Shown here: piece by piece, positions 26,650 through 60,220 of the stretch
How positions within the stretch are numbered: position 1 is the first letter of the stretch
How the letters are laid out: each line of letters begins with the position of its first letter
Origin: Podarcis pityusensis
Taxonomy: Eukaryota
DNA length: 64,000 nt
NCBI GenBank assembly: GCA_964106645.2
Contig: OZ067054.1
Direction: 5' to 3' (one strand)
The notes under the pieces: model-generated
Seen by the model: the letters and a program-made list of their open reading frames with translations, nothing else
Told to the model about the DNA's origin: nothing
Database searches by the model: none
Position numbers and translations under genes: made by a program

Positions 26650-52623
<25,974 letters not shown>

Positions 52624-54035
52624 AGGGCATCCCCTGCTGTCCCCTCTTCCTGTCTGCTCCACAGCCTCCACCTGAACCCCCAGCCAGTCAGCCGCCCCTT
52701 TGTGTGGAGGAAGATGGAACCGCTGAAAGCACATTTCATACACCACGGGGCTGGACTCTTGGGGCGGAGGACGCAGAGGCTCAAGTGAGGGAGCCCCAAG
52801 CAGGGGCCATCGCTGTGCCATGCCATGCTATGCCATGCCATGCCCCAGCCTAGGGAGGGGGAAGAAGGACTGGAGTTCCTCCCCTGCCCCCTGCTGCTGC
52901 CCCGTTTAACATGGACGCTGATGTTAGGGGTGGGTTTGGAGGGGGCAATTGTTATGGGGGGAGGGGGGCTGTTGGGTTTTTTACAAGTTGCAGTTACAGG
53001 AATGAAGTTCTTTTTGTATACCCCAGCATCCTGTGTCTTGGGGGTGGGAGGGTTATTCTCCCTGCCTCCATTTCTTGCCTCTGTACAGACCCTCTCCCTC
53101 AGTTTAGTTTTTAGTGTCTGCGTTGGTAATGGAGAGAGAGGAGTCTCTGCTGTTTGGGGAGGGAGGGGCGGGAGGTGGTTGGACCACCAATGCAGCTACT
53201 TTTGGGGGTGGGGGGGGGGGATGCAGCTCATTCTACAACAGCTGTTCAAATGCTCAGCCCAGGGCGCTTGTGGCTTCAACCCACCCCCTCTTCTCTACAC
53301 ATGCAGCAATTCCTCTAACAGCACAAGCTGATTTTTCCCTCTGCTCTTCCCTCTCCAGACCACAAGGCGGCATGTCTAGGCAAAAATGCCTTGCCATTCC
53401 TCTCCATCGTTTTATATAAAACCTTTTTTAGGGGGGAGGGGGAGACGTTTTGGAGGTATGGAGCCTGACCCCACAAGGTCAGGGTGATAAGCTAGGAACA
53501 AGACTGCGGGACAATACTGTTGCCTGTTGAAGTACAGCTTTCCCTCTGGTTGGGGCAGGGATCTAGGTTCCCTCCCACTCCAAAGGACTATGTACACCCC
53601 CTCCACTCGCTGCCTCTCTGGACATTCCACAGAGGGGAAGGGAGAAGAGCAGTCAGGGCTTATTCTTCAGAGATGGTGGGGAATAGGCTATAAAATGAAA
53701 AGCAAACAGCTGCATTGACTGCTATGTCCTACCTCTCCATTGTCAGAGAGATTTGGCAGGTAAAGCAGGCCCCCTCCAAAAAATAGCAAACAAACCCAGG
53801 AGCAGACCCCCTTCCCCACCAACTTGCTCTGTGCCCTGGTCTTTTGTATTATAATGTATTTCGCTGTGTCCCCTTCCTGTTCAGACCCTAAGCTCCTTCC
53901 CACCCTACTCTCCTGCCCCATTTATTTTCCTTTGAGACAGGAACAGTCCTCCTAGGAGTTCCCCATGGCTGTCCACCCCTCCGCTCCCCCTCACCCTAGT
54001 GCTGCGTATCTGTCGTTTTTGTGCTATTTTGAACA

Positions 54036-54041
54036 ATTAAA
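54036..54041 (+). terminator. HCFC1 polyadenylation signal ATTAAA
   Basis: Variant hexamer followed by a T-run and GT-rich element. Confidence 0.55.
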
Positions 54042-54213
54042 GACCTCTTTTTTTGGAAACCAGGTTCTGTCTGTGAAACTAGATCTTTCCCTCATCCTCT
54101 TCTAGTACTAGGGCGTTTCTGGCTACCTTTTGGGAGAAGAGCCCTCTTACCCTTGTGGGAGGACTGGGACACAAGTGTTTTCACCATTGAAAAGCACAAT
54201 ATTGGCATTCAGC

Positions 54214-54219
54214 TTTATT
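54214..54219 (-). terminator. Rab7-like polyadenylation signal AATAAA (candidate)
   Basis: TTTATT on + strand about 225 nt past the stop. Confidence 0.5.
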
Positions 54220-54443
54220 TCCATGTGCTTGGGAAGAGTAGCCTGGGATATGATCCAGCTCTCCCAAGTGCTAGGCTGTGTCATCCAGAGAACAAAGGTC
54301 TACCTTGGGATCCAGCTCCAGAAGCCTTGCCAAATGTCCTTGGGGCTGTTCTGTGGGGTTGCACTTTCACCCTTCGGGATTGCAGAGCATGAAGAGCCCA
54401 GCCCCTTAGACAGAAGGAATCTTCCCATCTGTATTTGGTCAGA

Positions 54444-54533
54444 TCAGCAGCTACACTTCTCTCTGGCTGCCCCTTCGGGTGGCCTGGTCTCCAGGTGAAC
54501 TGAGTCCAGTTGTGGCTCTTCAGGTACCCTCCG
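54444..54533 (-). CDS. Rab7-like exon 5, [10 protein letters not shown]...REKCSC*
   Basis: CXC geranylgeranylation motif then TGA. Confidence 0.9.
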   Translation of the reverse strand, partial: RRVPEEPQLDSVHLETRPPEGAAREKCSC

Positions 54534-57500
54534 CTGAGGTGAAACAGAAAGAAAAGTGGTGAGGGGGCAAGTGGTTGATGCAGATGGGCAGAGGGCATGA
54601 GGTGCAGGCTGTTGGGAAGGACTTTGTCTTATAAGAAAGTTGAAAGCTGGGAGAGGTGTTTTTGTTTTTAGGGATAAAAGCCATCTCAAAGGTATGTGGT
54701 CTGTCCGGGGCCTTATAAGGGCAGAGCTGAAAATGAGGTTTCTTACATTCTTTAGTACGGCCCGTATGGCCCACTCAAACACCTCCTGCACGTTGGTGGC
54801 TTCCTTGGCGCTGGTTTCAAAGTATTTGGCTTCATGAAGCTTGCTCCACATTTCTGCTTCCTCAGAAGACACCTGGACAAAAACAGGGCTTGGGCATACT
54901 CTGCTCTCTTCCCAATTCCATCTGCAGCTCTTAATCAAAAAGTTTGTCGTCTTTTTAGTGTACATAATGAGACCAAATCTTTAAGATAATATAATTTTTC
55001 CACAGATACCAAATTCTACACCTCTGCTCGACAATTATGCCAAAGTCCTCTGGTGAAGCTGTTCATTAGGATACAATATTCCCTGAACTTTCTGTCCACT
55101 CCCCGTCTCCTTGAGTCGTTGCAAAGAGTTCTTACAGCCCCCTAACAGAACCCCTAAAGAGTTCTGACCCCTAACTACTCCAACCCAATATGTCTGAGAG
55201 CCATGCAGGATGTGGACTTGTGCCCTGCACCTGGCTCCATATGTAGCCCTACCTAGTGGCAGACTTTGGGCTTTAAAATTTCAGCAGTAAACTCTGCAAT
55301 GCCAAACTTTGGGGGGGGGGTGCCTCTCGCCTTTCGCTGTTTGCTATTGTTGCCGGGCCCCCTTAGCTCGGCAGCCAGTGGCACTCCCCTAAATCCACCT
55401 CTGCCCCACCTCACGGTTCTCCAGGTCCATCTTGTTCCCAATGACAGCAGTGGGGAAAGTGGGCTCTTCCTCTGGCTCAATCTGCAACAGGAGCTGCTTG
55501 TGCCACTTATCCAGGGCTTGGAAAGAGCTGACAGATGTGACATCGAAGACGAGAAGGCAGCAGTCTGACCCCCGGTAGAGGGCAGTCCCCAGTGCTTGGA
55601 ACCTTTCTGTACCAGCTGTGTCCCAAATCTAGGTGCAAGAAGGGATAGAAGCTGAGACCTTGATTTCAAGACATCCCTGGGTCCTTGGTGACTTACCTCC
55701 ATTAATCTTGGTTCTCACAAAGTTAGCAAGCATAGGTTTTGTCTGGGGGCATCAGGGGATACCATGCCAAATGATGGTGTGGACTAGAGTCTCCCGTTTC
55801 TTTATTCAATTGATGTTCTGGATTCTTCCACCATGTTTGACCAGGGTTGAGTGGCTGCCACAATTCTGCCAACAGCGAACTAATCTACACATCAGAATGT
55901 ATATAATACCAAATTGCTATAAAGAGATGGAGAGCTGAAGGGGAGCAGCTTTCTTGAACCCCATCTGCCCAGCTACGTTGCTGGGAGTGCAGAAGAATGA
56001 TCCATACTTCTACATTTCAGGTGCCAGCTGTCCATTGTGACTGGCGCCCAGAAAACGAGTGCGGTTATGTACTGTTTTGCCATAAAAGTTGGCAATCTTG
56101 GATTAAACCAGCAGCCAGAAAAAGTACTGAATTAGATGGGGACTGCAGCCCTGTCATGTTGAATGTTGCTTCCTATGATTAGTGGAAACTGACAGTTGTG
56201 CAAAATGAGAAACCACAGGAATATGCTTACCACAAGCTGCTGAATTCAGCTTTGTCACGGAACTTGGGTGTGTGTGGTGCAGTACTGTACACGGACACAA
56301 CCAGTTTGCTATATGGGTTAGAAGCCTTTCCTCAAGCCAAATTGGCTGCTAGCATTGTAAAGGATCTTTGGGGTGGGGTGGGGGCTATCTTGGTACATGC
56401 ACTTTGATCAGGAGTGTTTGCTGTAAAGGTGCCTTTTCTGCCATGCTCTTGATTTTTTTTTTCTTTTGCTTTTTTGAATGGATGGTGTTTAATTTTGCCC
56501 TGTTGGTATGGCACTGGCCATCATTATTGTCTATGAATTGATAAAACTTTGCATGGAACAATTGATAACATGATCCCAAAGAATGATCTGACCACATGTG
56601 GGGTAAATTCTGCTCAGCTTGAGGCTAACCTGGTCTAGCTTTGTAAGTTTTTGCATAGATAGAAGATCACTTTGGAAGCCATATGGTAAGCTCCTTACAG
56701 GAAGGGCCAAGTGTAGGTGCGTTTCGTTGATCTTGCAGCCCAAGGGAGAATTGTGTTAGTTCATGAGAGTTGGGCCATTGCATATTTGGGACTGCAGCAA
56801 TATTGAAATTTCAGTTTTTTAGTTGTGCATATTGCTTCTGTACAAATTGGGGAACAAGAAATGGAAATAAGAATTCAGCATTGTCATTAACATTAATTCT
56901 AGAAGGGAAAGGGTGTTTGCTTTAACTAAGAACCGATTTTTAGCAAATAGCTAGAGTCCACATTGTAATATGCTCGTGGCACCCCACCCGGGGCCTGTCT
57001 CATGGTGATAGGCTTTAGTCCACAAATGCCTGTATCTTATTGACTCTCTTAAGGCTGCCACAATAAAGCTAAAACAAGGCACTTGTAGCAAAACATAGCA
57101 GATTTGGGGTGCTCATATTGAGGGGGCCAGAGGACCCCTTTTCTAGAACATTCTGTTCCATTTTCCTGTATTTTATTTGCCACCACAATTGTCACTGAGC
57201 ACAACCGTCAATTCACTTGCCCATTTTAGATTCTCTTCCTTACACACAAACCTTTAAATATTTTCCTGAAATAGGTGCTTGTACAGAAATTGGATCCCTG
57301 CTACTGCTCCCTCCATCTTGTGCACGAAGGGTGCCATTCTGGCTACATAAGGCACATATAGGATAATTTTAGACCTGGCGTGGGGAACTTGTGGCCTCCA
57401 GGTGGTGTTAAGGCTCCCTCCAGTCTTAGCCAGCATGGCCAATGGCTTAGGGATTATAGGAGCTGGAAATGAAGTATGTTGCTAAAATTGCCCTAGGCTG

Positions 57501-59785
57501 GAGCACAGGGTTTTTTTAATGGGTAACTCTGCTGAGCCTACCTGCACGGTCAGTTTGCGTCCATCAATGTTTACTTCCTTGCTGAGGAAATCTGCTCCAA
57601 TGGTGGCTCTGTAGCGACTGCTGAAGCGGTTGTTAACATACTGGTTCATCAGGGCAGATTTGCCCGCCCTGCGGGGAACGGAGAAGGGTTGACATTTTAA
57701 ATCTGGAGGTCTAGTCAGTAACCTCCCCCCCCACCCCGCCGCCTCATCAACCAGCACAGGGCTGCAGAGGTGGAGCTGGTTCTCTGCTCCTGAACTGCCT
57801 CTTGCACACATGCACGCAGCCTTGTGATAAAGCCTTTTTGGTGGCAGCAGTGGGGAATCCCACGGTAAGATGGCGAAGGCCTTTTGAGCAGCAGTCACTG
57901 GGGCACAGCAGCAGGACGGGAAGGTCTGATGATTTGCTTGTCCCCTTCCGAGGAATATCTAGTTGGCTACTGTAGGAAACGCACTGCGTGAGGCTCAATT
58001 GGCCTTTTGAGTACAAAGGTTTGAAAAAGGCATAAGGAATGCCTGATGCAACTCCAAAGGCAGAATAAGTCATCTTGGTAAAACATGCTTAAAATCAAAC
58101 AATGGCAAAAGCATATCTTGCATCAAAATGCTTTGGCATTGCATGTACAAAGTCTCCAGAAGCCTTTTCTGATGGTGCCCTTTTTTTACTTGGGTCACTT
58201 TTGTACAAAGCTTTGTGTTTGACTGATTTTTGTCTTAATCATTTCAAACAACTGACATGGTTTCAAAATGATATTCAGTGCTTTGCATGCACTGTGTTTG
58301 GCAGCGTTTGAGCCCTACTCTTCTTGTGTGTTTTTCTTCACATTTGGTGGATAAAGGTTAATCCTAACTATTTTACTTTTTGGCATAAAAGGTAAATGAG
58401 AAATCTTAAATCCTCATCGAATTGGACAGTTGTATGCATTCATAATATCTTAAACACATACTAAGGCCCCTTTTGAGTTTAGATACAGATAATGGAAATA
58501 ACCAAATTATTTTACTCAATACATAAAAACTACACTATGTTTAAATAATGGTTATAAAAAGTTGAAGGTGAGTGTTAATTATAATTATACAGTAAGGATT
58601 ATTACTACACTGCCATAAAGCTGTGGTTACTTAATAAATTAGTTGCAACAACAGCTGCTACCAGGCTCTTCAGAGTCAGGTTGATGGGGGAAGGTTAAGC
58701 AAGCACATTTTTCTGAGTATTTTGATGTACATGTGTTTTTGTTAACACTTGTGAAGTTATGCTAATTTTCCAAGCATGCTCGACTAGAGGGGCAGCTGAA
58801 TAAAAATGCAGTAAGTTCTCATGTTCCATTTAGCTCCCCATGACTAGCAAATGCAGACTTGCAGCCTGACCCTGCACCTGTCTACTCAGAGGTAAATCCC
58901 ACTGAGTTCAAGAGGGTTGTATTCCTGCAGTCTAAAGTATGCAACATATTTAAAATGGCAAAATAATGTGAAGAGAACAAATCACAGTTGTGCATAAAAC
59001 ATACAGGCTGCAGGTTTTTCTTTTCTTAAAAAGCACCTTTTTATTGCATCGATGCTCTCTGGGTTCTGGCAATGGTAATACCACTGTGTCCATAGGATAA
59101 TAGTCACTTGACTTGGCCTCTAGTTATTTGGTGTTGCCTCTTCCATCTGCTTTAATTCTGGGAACAAACAGCTGGTCTAATTCAGCTGCACCCCACAAAA
59201 CTGTCCTGTTATCAGCTGCCTGTGGTATACACACGGAGCCCGGGCAGCTGCAACGTGGTCCCACTTGTTGCAGGTACTTTCAAGGACTTTGAAGGAGGTG
59301 GGACAGGAGAGCAGCGTGGAGCGCACCGGGATCTCGCTGCCCGTGTGAAGCAAAGACTAAGGCGCTCGCGGAGCGAATCAAGACGACTTCTTCAAGCGGG
59401 CGCCTCGCCCCAGGCCGCGGGGGCCGAACGCTTCCCAGCCTGGGCTGCAGAGAATACCGGGCGGGTGGTTGTGGAGGCAGCAGAGCCTCGCGGAAGTTTC
59501 TCCCTGCGCGCGTTTACCGGGCTGCCCCGGACGGGCTGCCCCTGCCCCTGCGCGGCGCCGCCCCTTCCACCTGCCGCCTTAACCCCTTGGCTGCCGAACG
59601 GGGACAGGATCCCGGGAAGCCTTCCTCTTCCCGCCAGCCTGGAGCCCCGACACCCGCTTAGCCGTCGGAGCCCGGCCGGGGGGCCAGGAGGGGCCAGCTC
59701 TCCCGGCGCCTTCCCGATCCAGGCGCCCCTTTGCTTACCCGGAATTGCCGATCAGCAGGATCTTGAGGTGGGAACGTCTGAACAT
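54444..59785 (-). CDS. Ras-related protein Rab7-like paralog, 202 aa; coding exons 59739-59785, 57542-57668, 55410-55628, 54747-54872, 54444-54533
   Basis: G1 GNSGAGKS, G2 [10 protein letters not shown]3 WDTAGTE, G4 GNKMD, G5 ETSAK and C-terminal CSC; canonical splice sites; 609 nt in one frame. Confidence 0.92.
54747..54872 (-). CDS. Rab7-like exon 4, VSSEEAEMW...[12 protein letters not shown]...LKN
   Basis: G5 motif; AG/GT ends. Confidence 0.92.
55410..55628 (-). CDS. Rab7-like exon 3, [14 protein letters not shown]...[10 protein letters not shown]
   Basis: Switch II, YRGSDCC and G4; 219 nt; absent from the ORF track, translated by hand. Confidence 0.92.
57542..57668 (-). CDS. Rab7-like exon 2, [11 protein letters not shown]...KLTVQ
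   Basis: P-loop and switch I; AG/GT ends; 127 nt. Confidence 0.92.
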
Positions 59786-60220
59786 GGGGCGTCTGCGCCA
59801 GAACCTGCGGAGAGACGGGCGGGTGAGGGCGGCGGCGGCGGCGGCGGCGGAGCAGCCCTACGGGCAGTCGGGTCAGCTCGGGACCCCCCCGCGGCCAGGC
59901 GTGGATTCCCGCGACCTTTGTGGGGTCCCCTGCTCAGTCCGCGGGGCGGGCGCCCGGACCTCGGCCCCCAAGCCCCTCCCCGGCCGTGCGCCCCCCCGAG
60001 CCACCTCGGCGCGGCACAGCCTCCCGCAAACTCCCTCCGGAGAAGGGAGGGCGCTGCTTGGAGCTCCGGGCAGCTGCTCGCTCTCGCCTTCCTGCCGGGC
60101 TGCTCGGCGCCAGGGAGGAGGAAGGGCGAGGGGCTGCGCCTTCCGGACACGCTTTCAGGCGAGGCCGGTGGGATCCGGCTTGTGCCAAGGCGAAGCAAGG
60201 ATCGCGATGGAGAATCTCAT
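59300..60220 (-). promoter_or_regulatory. CpG island over promoter, exon 1 and intron 1 of the Rab7-like gene
   Basis: Very high GC/CpG, GC boxes, short (GGC)n run at about 59828-59850. Confidence 0.8.
59739..59785 (-). CDS. Rab7-like exon 1, [16 protein letters not shown]
   Basis: ATG in CpG island; GG|GTAAGC donor. Confidence 0.88.

Follow-up and report, generated by a model that had tools for sequence, protein, structure and literature searches.

Rab7 acts as the master switch for late endosomes and lysosomes. In Ras-like GTPases a glutamine of the G3 motif positions the attacking water. The stretch of DNA analyzed here (the window: 64,000 nucleotides of contig OZ067054.1, assembly GCA_964106645.2, from the lizard Podarcis pityusensis) carries on its minus strand a Rab7-like gene in which this glutamine is replaced by threonine. 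The locus thereby raises the question of whether the replacement is an error, the mark of a decaying duplicate, or the catalytic site of a working GTPase and, if so, which one. The gene is identified below as the Podarcis ortholog of Rab7c, a clade that was named in 2009. The best explanation, to which we assign a probability of about 0.72, is that this ortholog possesses an altered nucleotide pocket and effector surface, with slow intrinsic hydrolysis and a switch gated by GTPase-activating proteins (GAPs) of the TBC type.

An earlier examination of the letters (the sequence-only reading) had singled out positions 55575–55628 as a rewired Rab7-like switch II with the equivalents of Q67T, S72A and F77L. 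Translation of 55425–55628 placed the stretch in coding sequence on the minus strand. The 20 codons compared with RAB7A occupy 55628–55569, and the interval first reported covers 18 of them. The residues that had been quoted are the exact translation of 55569–55628, and the RAB7A numbering given for them holds: residues 1–68 of exon 3 align without gaps to Rab7a 61–128 in a phmmer search of the PDB (Rab7/Rab7a, 5e-24). With the numbering of this alignment, the stretch and its departures from RAB7A are as follows.

55569–55628, minus strand: switch II stretch of 20 codons, identical in X2, an independent DNA run of this organism.
55608–55610, minus strand: exon 3 Thr (ACA) at the Q67 position.
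55593–55595, minus strand: exon 3 Ala (GCA) at the S72 position.
55584–55586, minus strand: exon 3 Thr at the V75 position, a further change (V75T).
55578–55580, minus strand: exon 3 Leu (CTC) at the F77 position.

The Gln-to-Thr change proved to be real and fixed in orthologs. Searches were run exon by exon and with the Varanus ortholog, while the joined model of 202 residues was used for alignment, substitution rates and the tree. When exon 3 was searched with phmmer against 1.8 billion cluster representatives, 20 WDTAGT proteins appeared among the best 150 matches, those with names coming from frogs, teleosts, platypus and squamates. A search with exon 4 within its open frame returned squamate proteins only, the top named match being Podarcis lilfordi “Rab-7a-like isoform X1” at 100% identity. 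The clade was then tallied from a full-length search with the Varanus ortholog (P0009) followed by a motif count, giving 113 sequences with Thr at the Q67 position in 112, Ser in one and Gln in none. Clade members were found in sharks, rays, bichir, gar, many teleosts, frogs, salamanders, caecilians, at least 18 squamate species, echidna and platypus. All of the squamate orthologs read WDTAGTERF, and the sole Ser belongs to the shark Heterodontus francisci (P0255; VWDTAGSERF). Gln-type matches lower in the list were ordinary Rab7, those of horseshoe crab and a tunicate among them. The best 120 matches to the full-length Varanus query included no protein from a bird, turtle, crocodilian or therian; since an ortholog from these groups should outscore those of fishes in the ranked list, the gene is scored there as not detected, which is not proof of loss.

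At the codon level, Thr67 is encoded by ACA in the four tetrapods that were sampled and by ACC in gar, and the flanking codons differ synonymously. The passage from Gln (CAA/CAG) to Thr (ACN) requires two base changes and is therefore no one-step slip. No error is involved: Thr at the Q67 position is a trait conserved in the family, and a small hydroxyl residue seems to be needed there rather than the mere loss of Gln.

The clade in which this trait is found already has a name. Rab7c was described in 2009 from a divergent zebrafish and Xenopus clade (Mackiewicz & Wyroba, BMC Evol Biol 9:101, PMC2693434), with D. rerio NP_001013496.1 and X. tropicalis NP_989167.1 as members and a consensus His at position 8 in place of the Leu of other Rab7/Rab9 groups. 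It was placed at the base of vertebrate Rab7a, tied to the early whole-genome duplications and presumed lost in amniotes (PMC2693434). In a maximum-likelihood tree of 38 Thr-type and 7 Gln-type sequences, the Thr clade was supported 100/100. The position of Rab7c relative to named Rab7a, Rab7b and Rab9 was taken from PMC2693434 and from the ranking of PDB scores. X. tropicalis NP_989167.1 (P0281) nests in the same clade as the window protein, and the window protein has His at the position aligned to RAB7A L8. Because a founding member of Rab7c falls in the Thr clade and this His is present, the window gene is the Podarcis ortholog of Rab7c, and not all amniotes have lost Rab7c. The internal order of the Thr clade is that of the species tree (cartilaginous fishes; bichir, gar and teleosts; amphibians; monotreme plus squamates), and this topology points to a single-copy gene passed on vertically from the jawed-vertebrate ancestor.

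A different identity is suggested by database labels. Many clade members are called “Ras-related protein Rab-7b” in UniRef, and Rab7b and Rab7c are both divergent Rab7 paralogs, so the window gene might be read as the lizard ortholog of mammalian RAB7B, its switch II being the known Rab7b divergence. The phylogeny of PMC2693434, however, splits Rab7b from Rab7c. X. tropicalis possesses both NP_001096381.1 (Rab7b) and NP_989167.1 (Rab7c), and it is the latter that lies in the Thr clade; in lizards and platypus, moreover, the gene is flanked by a RENBP-type gene on one side and HCFC1 on the other. In humans, by contrast, these two genes are taken to be neighbors on Xq28 with no Rab gene in between, and RAB7B is presumably on chromosome 1, which also speaks against this identity. 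By the published phylogeny the window gene is not RAB7B, and we hold the RAB7B reading to be highly improbable. Zebrafish rab7bb (zgc:100918) was rejected as well: the three zebrafish genes that have been studied are Rab7a-type and 88% identical to one another, and PMC2693434 lists Rab7c under a fourth accession.

The gene itself is intact, with five exons on the minus strand from 59785 to 54444 encoding 202 residues. Its coding sequence of 609 nt ends with CSC and a stop codon, and every intron is GT–AG. Public contigs from four runs were aligned over 54000–59900, among them the same-organism DNA run X2 and runs X15 and X17 of a close relative. The coding parts, with the residues outside exon 3 that matter for the comparison with RAB7A, are listed here.

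59739–59785, minus strand: coding exon 1, 47 nt (15 residues and the first 2 nt of a Gly codon); limits read from the ATG start and the GT donor, with joint 57668/59739 in X15 and X17 contigs.
59768–59770, minus strand: exon 1 His at the RAB7A L8 position (the window reads SHLKI).
59744–59746, minus strand: exon 1 Asn at the D16 position of the P-loop, from a codon check.
57542–57668, minus strand: coding exon 2, 127 nt, with the remaining P-loop (AGKS) and switch I (YRATIGADF); joints 55628/57542 and 57668/59739 in X15 and X17 contigs.
57656–57658, minus strand: exon 2 Ser at the T22 position.
55410–55628, minus strand: coding exon 3, 219 nt, from the switch II region to the NKMD guanine-specificity motif (55425–55436).
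54747–54872, minus strand: coding exon 4, 126 nt, with SAK (G5), 100% identical to the Podarcis lilfordi protein; joints 54872/55410 (X15, X17) and 54533/54747 (X17).
54444–54533, minus strand: coding exon 5, 87 nt plus stop, the hypervariable tail ending in CSC (CXC double-prenylation motif).

The P-loop (GNSG|AGKS) is interrupted by intron 1. The joints 54533/54747, 54872/55410, 55628/57542 and 57668/59739 in the X15/X17 contigs are exactly the four introns of the model, and word depth over the exons and the 3' untranslated region is several-fold above that of the introns. Since the contigs carry all four joints and exon depth exceeds intron depth, the Rab gene is transcribed and spliced as modeled, as judged from related-species contigs of presumed RNA. 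The joined model is identical at 202/202 residues to Podarcis lilfordi RefSeq “Rab-7a-like” (isoform X1), except for a 19-residue insert in the latter that arises from an alternative acceptor. The gene is thus already annotated under this name, which is a similarity label only.

With the model in hand, one can ask whether the reading stems from an error of assembly, from a private variant or from the decay of a RAB7A duplicate. Such an origin would fit a protein that is only about 51% identical to ordinary Rab7 and in which a nearly universal catalytic motif is broken. Nevertheless, a contig of 3658 bases from the independent run X2 spans exon 3 without a difference at 55575–55628 (10 of its 10 differences lie outside), and the same residues recur in more than 100 species; the DNA run and the orthologs together rule out an assembly error or a private variant, the concern that the sequence-only reading had itself raised. 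The frame is open, the introns are GT–AG throughout and spliced contigs exist, while the conserved intron positions and exon sizes show that the gene is not a retrocopy. The ratio of nonsynonymous to synonymous substitution rates (dN/dS, pairwise Nei–Gojobori) was 0.085–0.10 among three squamate families and 0.17–0.24 at deep distances, where dS is saturated. Purifying selection on Rab7c is strong. A pseudogene or retrocopy is ruled out by the dN/dS of about 0.09 together with the intact frame, the conserved introns and the spliced contigs, and the chance that error or decay explains the locus is practically nil.

Single-base differences were seen in exon 3 among the runs. All four aligned runs, one of them from the same organism, read G at 55533 against A in the window, a synonymous difference in the last base of a Ser codon. 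A C at 55509 in three runs of related organisms replaces Asp by Glu, the residue also present in Zootoca. Within the introns, the stretches 55182–55378, 57349–57545 and 58728–58924 (introns 3, 2 and 1, respectively) exceeded the word depth of their surroundings 10 to 50 times in the two DNA runs; many loose ends occur at their borders, and they look like interspersed repeats of the short interspersed nuclear element (SINE) type.

The Thr is one of several changes that set the clade apart. Diagnostic sites were defined by comparing 99 Thr-type with 8 Gln-type full-length sequences, as sites at least 85% conserved within each group and differing between groups. I13L, D16N, T22S, Q67T and F77L were obtained; the nucleotide pocket accounts for three of them and the aromatic triad for one. 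The P-loop of the clade accordingly reads GNSG(V/A)GKS versus GDSGVGKT. Leu at the F77 position is present in 99% of the clade, in agreement with the F77L claim of the sequence-only reading. Most of the Gln-type sequences tallied have Leu at position 8. In the clade Leu is rare there: tetrapods, bichir, gar and some sharks and teleosts carry His, and many teleosts Thr, Ser or Cys. Kept intact are the P-loop Lys–Ser that serves Mg and phosphate, the switch I Thr, F45, W62, NKxD, SAK and the CXC tail.

The S72 position behaves differently. Ser (TCN) is its commonest state and is found in fishes, amphibians, monotremes, Gekko and Pogona, while Ala (GCA), one base away from TCN, is seen in the remaining squamates alone. 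Ser72 is ancestral, and Ala72 is a later, squamate-confined change outside the core design. Of the Thr/Ala/Leu set put forward from the letters, Thr and Leu are conserved in orthologs but Ala is not: S72A is present in the window and is no trait of the clade. The notion of a phospho-insensitive Rab7 can apply at most to part of one order, as Ala72 is confined to squamates, and it fails as a general trait. The P-loop changes D16N and T22S, the replacement of Leu by His at position 8 and the membership of the Rab7c clade named in 2009 come in addition to what had been seen from the letters.

That the protein is a Rab is supported by several comparisons. Exon 3 alone matched the Pfam Ras family (1.7e-18), and the Varanus ortholog matched TIGR00231 small_GTP (2.5e-28), NCBIfam giving only the generic small-GTPase domain. 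The best PDB sequence match was Rab7a over the full length (3.5e-63), with 216 bits for Rab7a and 192 bits for Rab9A, and the best 60 PDB sequence matches listed were all Rab or Ypt. The motifs G1–G5 are all present (GNSGAGKS, switch I, the Thr-bearing G3, NKMD and SAK), and the window protein ends in the double cysteine of Rabs, as a CXC tail (CSC and stop) that is conserved across the clade. The catalytic Gln of the Rab G3 motif (DTAGQE) is replaced by Thr. Some accepted Rabs also lack this Gln, and its absence is compatible with Rab membership. An AlphaFold model of the Varanus ortholog has the Rab fold, its best matches being GTP-bound Rab7 at a template-modeling (TM) score of about 0.9. 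Low confidence was confined to the switches and the tail, with a predicted local distance difference test (pLDDT) below 50–70 in both switches.

Nearest relatives were considered in turn as the identity of the gene. An ortholog of RAB7A would be expected to carry GDSGVGKT, Gln67 and Phe77 at very high identity, whereas N16, S22, T67 and L77 are fixed here and identity is about 51%. Membership of the Rap family was rejected too, given that the best PDB matches listed are Rab or Ypt, that the tail is CXC and that only the Thr is shared.

How a Rab with Thr at this position would work can be predicted from published mechanisms. Rap naturally has Thr there; its Thr61 serves GAP binding and not the chemistry, and RapGAP inserts an Asn in trans (PMC2265111). 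TBC GAPs insert an Arg and a Gln in trans, the Rab's own Gln being pushed aside and taking no part (PMC5902221), in agreement with the expectation of the sequence-only reading that these GAPs bring their own Gln. Intrinsic hydrolysis by Rabs is slow, with half-lives of 30 min to hours (PMC5902221). On the effector side, RAB7A-L8A loses RILP binding and keeps VPS35 and FYCO1 (PMC12697282).

By homology, Rab7c would be geranylgeranylated at its CXC tail and, because G1–G5 are all present, would bind GTP and Mg normally. Its intrinsic GTP hydrolysis would be slower than that of Rab7a, and its inactivation would require GAPs that supply the water-positioning residue in trans, the TBC GAPs with their Arg and Gln fingers being the most plausible. 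Rab7c would then be a more strictly GAP-gated switch than Rab7a. We consider slower intrinsic hydrolysis with dependence on GAPs to be a probable property, somewhat less secure than the reading as a whole. The protein is also predicted to read out to an effector set unlike that of Rab7a. RILP-type binding would be the likeliest loss because position 8, position 77 and the RabSF4 stretch are all changed, while interactions through switch I and the interswitch may persist. The slow hydrolysis, altered effector specificity and distinct late-endosomal branch proposed in the sequence-only reading are thus plausible expectations from homology.

The same gene can be given a more modest interpretation, in which it is Rab7c but the Thr is functionally near-neutral. 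The Gln in cis would have been lost early in the clade at no cost, as inactivation in cells is GAP-driven, and the Thr would since have been held by co-adapted neighbors, with functional divergence only in effector surfaces or expression. The dual-finger mechanism, which makes the cis-Gln dispensable in GAP-stimulated hydrolysis, is consistent with this, as is the slowness of intrinsic Rab hydrolysis in any case (PMC5902221). Ser in one shark also suggests that a conservative change is tolerated. Nevertheless, all 113 sequences have kept Thr or Ser for more than 400 million years, during which neighboring codons changed synonymously, a pattern of constraint and not of drift. Three of the five clade-defining changes fall in the nucleotide pocket, moreover, and look like a concerted change of the catalytic site. 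A near-neutral Thr is for these reasons judged unlikely, though with far more to be said for it than for a RAB7B identity or an error.

Several points weigh against the reading of Rab7c as a GAP-gated switch with its own effector surface. The hydrolysis rate, GAP sensitivity, localization and effectors of Rab7c are all predictions from homology. A lower intrinsic rate may have little physiological effect, because Rab inactivation in cells is already GAP-driven. The AlphaFold model is nucleotide-free, of low confidence at both switches and uninformative on catalysis, and the alignment of the RabSF4 stretch is weak. The Gln-type set behind the diagnostic sites is small, at 8 sequences, several of them unnamed. 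Finally, X15 and X17 are only presumed to be RNA, and their contigs come from a sister taxon and not from the organism of the window.

Beyond its coding exons, the locus holds the following features.

54873–54929, minus strand: optional exon 4 extension of 57 nt through an upstream AG acceptor, adding 19 in-frame residues inside the GTPase domain.
54000–54443, minus strand: 3' untranslated region; X15/X17 exon 5 contigs run through 54000–54533 at equal high word depth, and the far end lies beyond 54000.
59036–59335, minus strand: candidate alternative 5' exon in intron 1; one low-depth X17 contig, seen once, joins 57667 to 59036.
29754–49646, plus strand: HCFC1, neighbor of the Rab gene.

RefSeq isoform X1 of Podarcis lilfordi includes the extension at 54873–54929, while the spliced contigs aligned here use the 54872 acceptor. 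An alternative 5' exon at 59036–59335 is suggested, since the X17 contig skips exon 1. Directly upstream of the start codon, the stretch 59800–60100 is rich in G+C, resembles a CpG island and contains a (GCC)n run. It may be a shared bidirectional promoter, since a RENBP-type gene lies head-to-head at about 1–4.5 kb in Pogona, Varanus and platypus.

In the window, HCFC1 lies downstream of the Rab gene in tail-to-tail orientation. Its C-terminal Fn3 region in the frame 49146–49646 matches “HCF C-terminal chain 1” (1.6e-60), and the Kelch-region open frame at 29754–30047 is taken to be the HCFC1 N-terminus. A very long open HCFC1 exon was also observed at 42375–44408 on the plus strand. The surroundings are similar in platypus, Pogona and Varanus, with a RENBP-type (N-acetylglucosamine-2-epimerase) gene upstream head-to-head and a gene of 2200–2360 aa downstream tail-to-tail. 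In gar a protein-kinase gene is upstream head-to-head and a 2179 aa gene downstream tail-to-tail. Synteny beside HCFC1 appears to have been stable since the bony-fish ancestor, which is new relative to the literature searched; the text of PMC2693434 reports a synteny of its own for Rab7c, with the syntenic genes unnamed.

Exon structure is equally stable. Exon sizes of 47 or 53, 127, 219, 126 and 81–93 nt are alike from gar to lizard, with platypus exon 2 as the exception, and the 219-nt exon 3 is common to gar, platypus, Pogona and Varanus. In the annotations of platypus (L001, 10500–10675) and echidna, exon 2 has 175 versus 127 nt and adds 16 residues in the middle of the P-loop (GNSG...VGKS). 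This longer exon is probably a mis-called acceptor and no real isoform.

The window gene belongs to a known Rab family and to a published clade within it, and Rabs that lack the catalytic Gln are already known elsewhere. New relative to the literature searched are the retention of Rab7c in squamates and monotremes, its presence in cartilaginous fishes, bichir and gar, and the non-canonical catalytic pocket that defines the clade. A search for “rab7c” returned the 2009 paper as the only relevant one, and the motifs WDTAGTE or DTAGTERF returned no Rab context, only Rap2. The text of PMC2693434 mentions neither glutamine nor hydrolysis and does not describe the catalytic-site change.

Rab7c is accordingly no oddity of fish and frog. 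It is an intact, constrained gene found from sharks to lizards and monotremes, and nature offers in it a test of the extent to which a Rab can dispense with its own catalytic residue. To our knowledge, nearly all that is known of Rab7 comes from mammals, whose therian members appear to lack Rab7c. More tentatively, and with the odds rather against it, Rab7c might be a third, mechanistically distinct late-endosomal switch, essentially locked in the GTP state unless a GAP with a trans-Gln acts and blind to RILP-type effectors. It would then serve a trafficking branch present in most vertebrates and discarded by therians and possibly by birds, crocodilians and turtles. A zebrafish study covered three rab7 genes and called the triple mutant a complete loss of Rab7, and a Xenopus study named only rab7a and rab7b as paralogs; Rab7c is unaccounted for in both. 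If the proposal is true, the zebrafish triple mutant and the Xenopus Rab7 knock-downs would still hold an overlooked protein of the Rab7 family.

Among known systems, RAB7A (PDB 1T91, 1VG8, 1YHN) is the closest to the window protein in sequence and fold. The two share G1–G5, switch I (YxATIGADF), F45, W62 and the CXC tail. At about 51% identity to ordinary Rab7, the window protein differs from RAB7A in the fixed changes I13L, D16N, T22S, Q67T and F77L and in the replacement of L8. The RabSF4 stretch around V180/L182/Y183 (RAB7A 176–183) is not alignable in the window protein, and the chromosomal neighborhood of the gene is different. We take RAB7A to have the same five-exon layout, with the P-loop divided by the first intron.

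Rap1 and Rap2 (Thr61) have a DTAGTE identical to that of the window protein, with Thr replacing the water-positioning Gln. In contrast to Rap, the window protein is otherwise Rab7-like, has a CXC and not a CAAX tail, and would have TBC proteins rather than RapGAPs as its likely GAPs. The resemblance to Rap is convergent and limited to one residue. Among Rabs, the G3 Gln is replaced by Ser in Rab24, Leu in Rab25 and Arg in Rab20, which are thought to be mostly GTP-bound or GAP-dependent. These belong to other subfamilies and have other replacement residues, and no Rab7 paralog is among them.

The closest precedent is Rab7c as defined in 2009, with which the clade of the window protein shares the X. 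tropicalis founding member, His at position 8 and its divergence. Expressed sequence tag (EST) counts of Rab7c are below those of Rab7a, and a synteny of its own is reported for it. That definition rested on two members and assumed loss in amniotes, whereas the gene is found here intact in at least 18 squamate species, both monotremes, cartilaginous fishes, bichir and gar.

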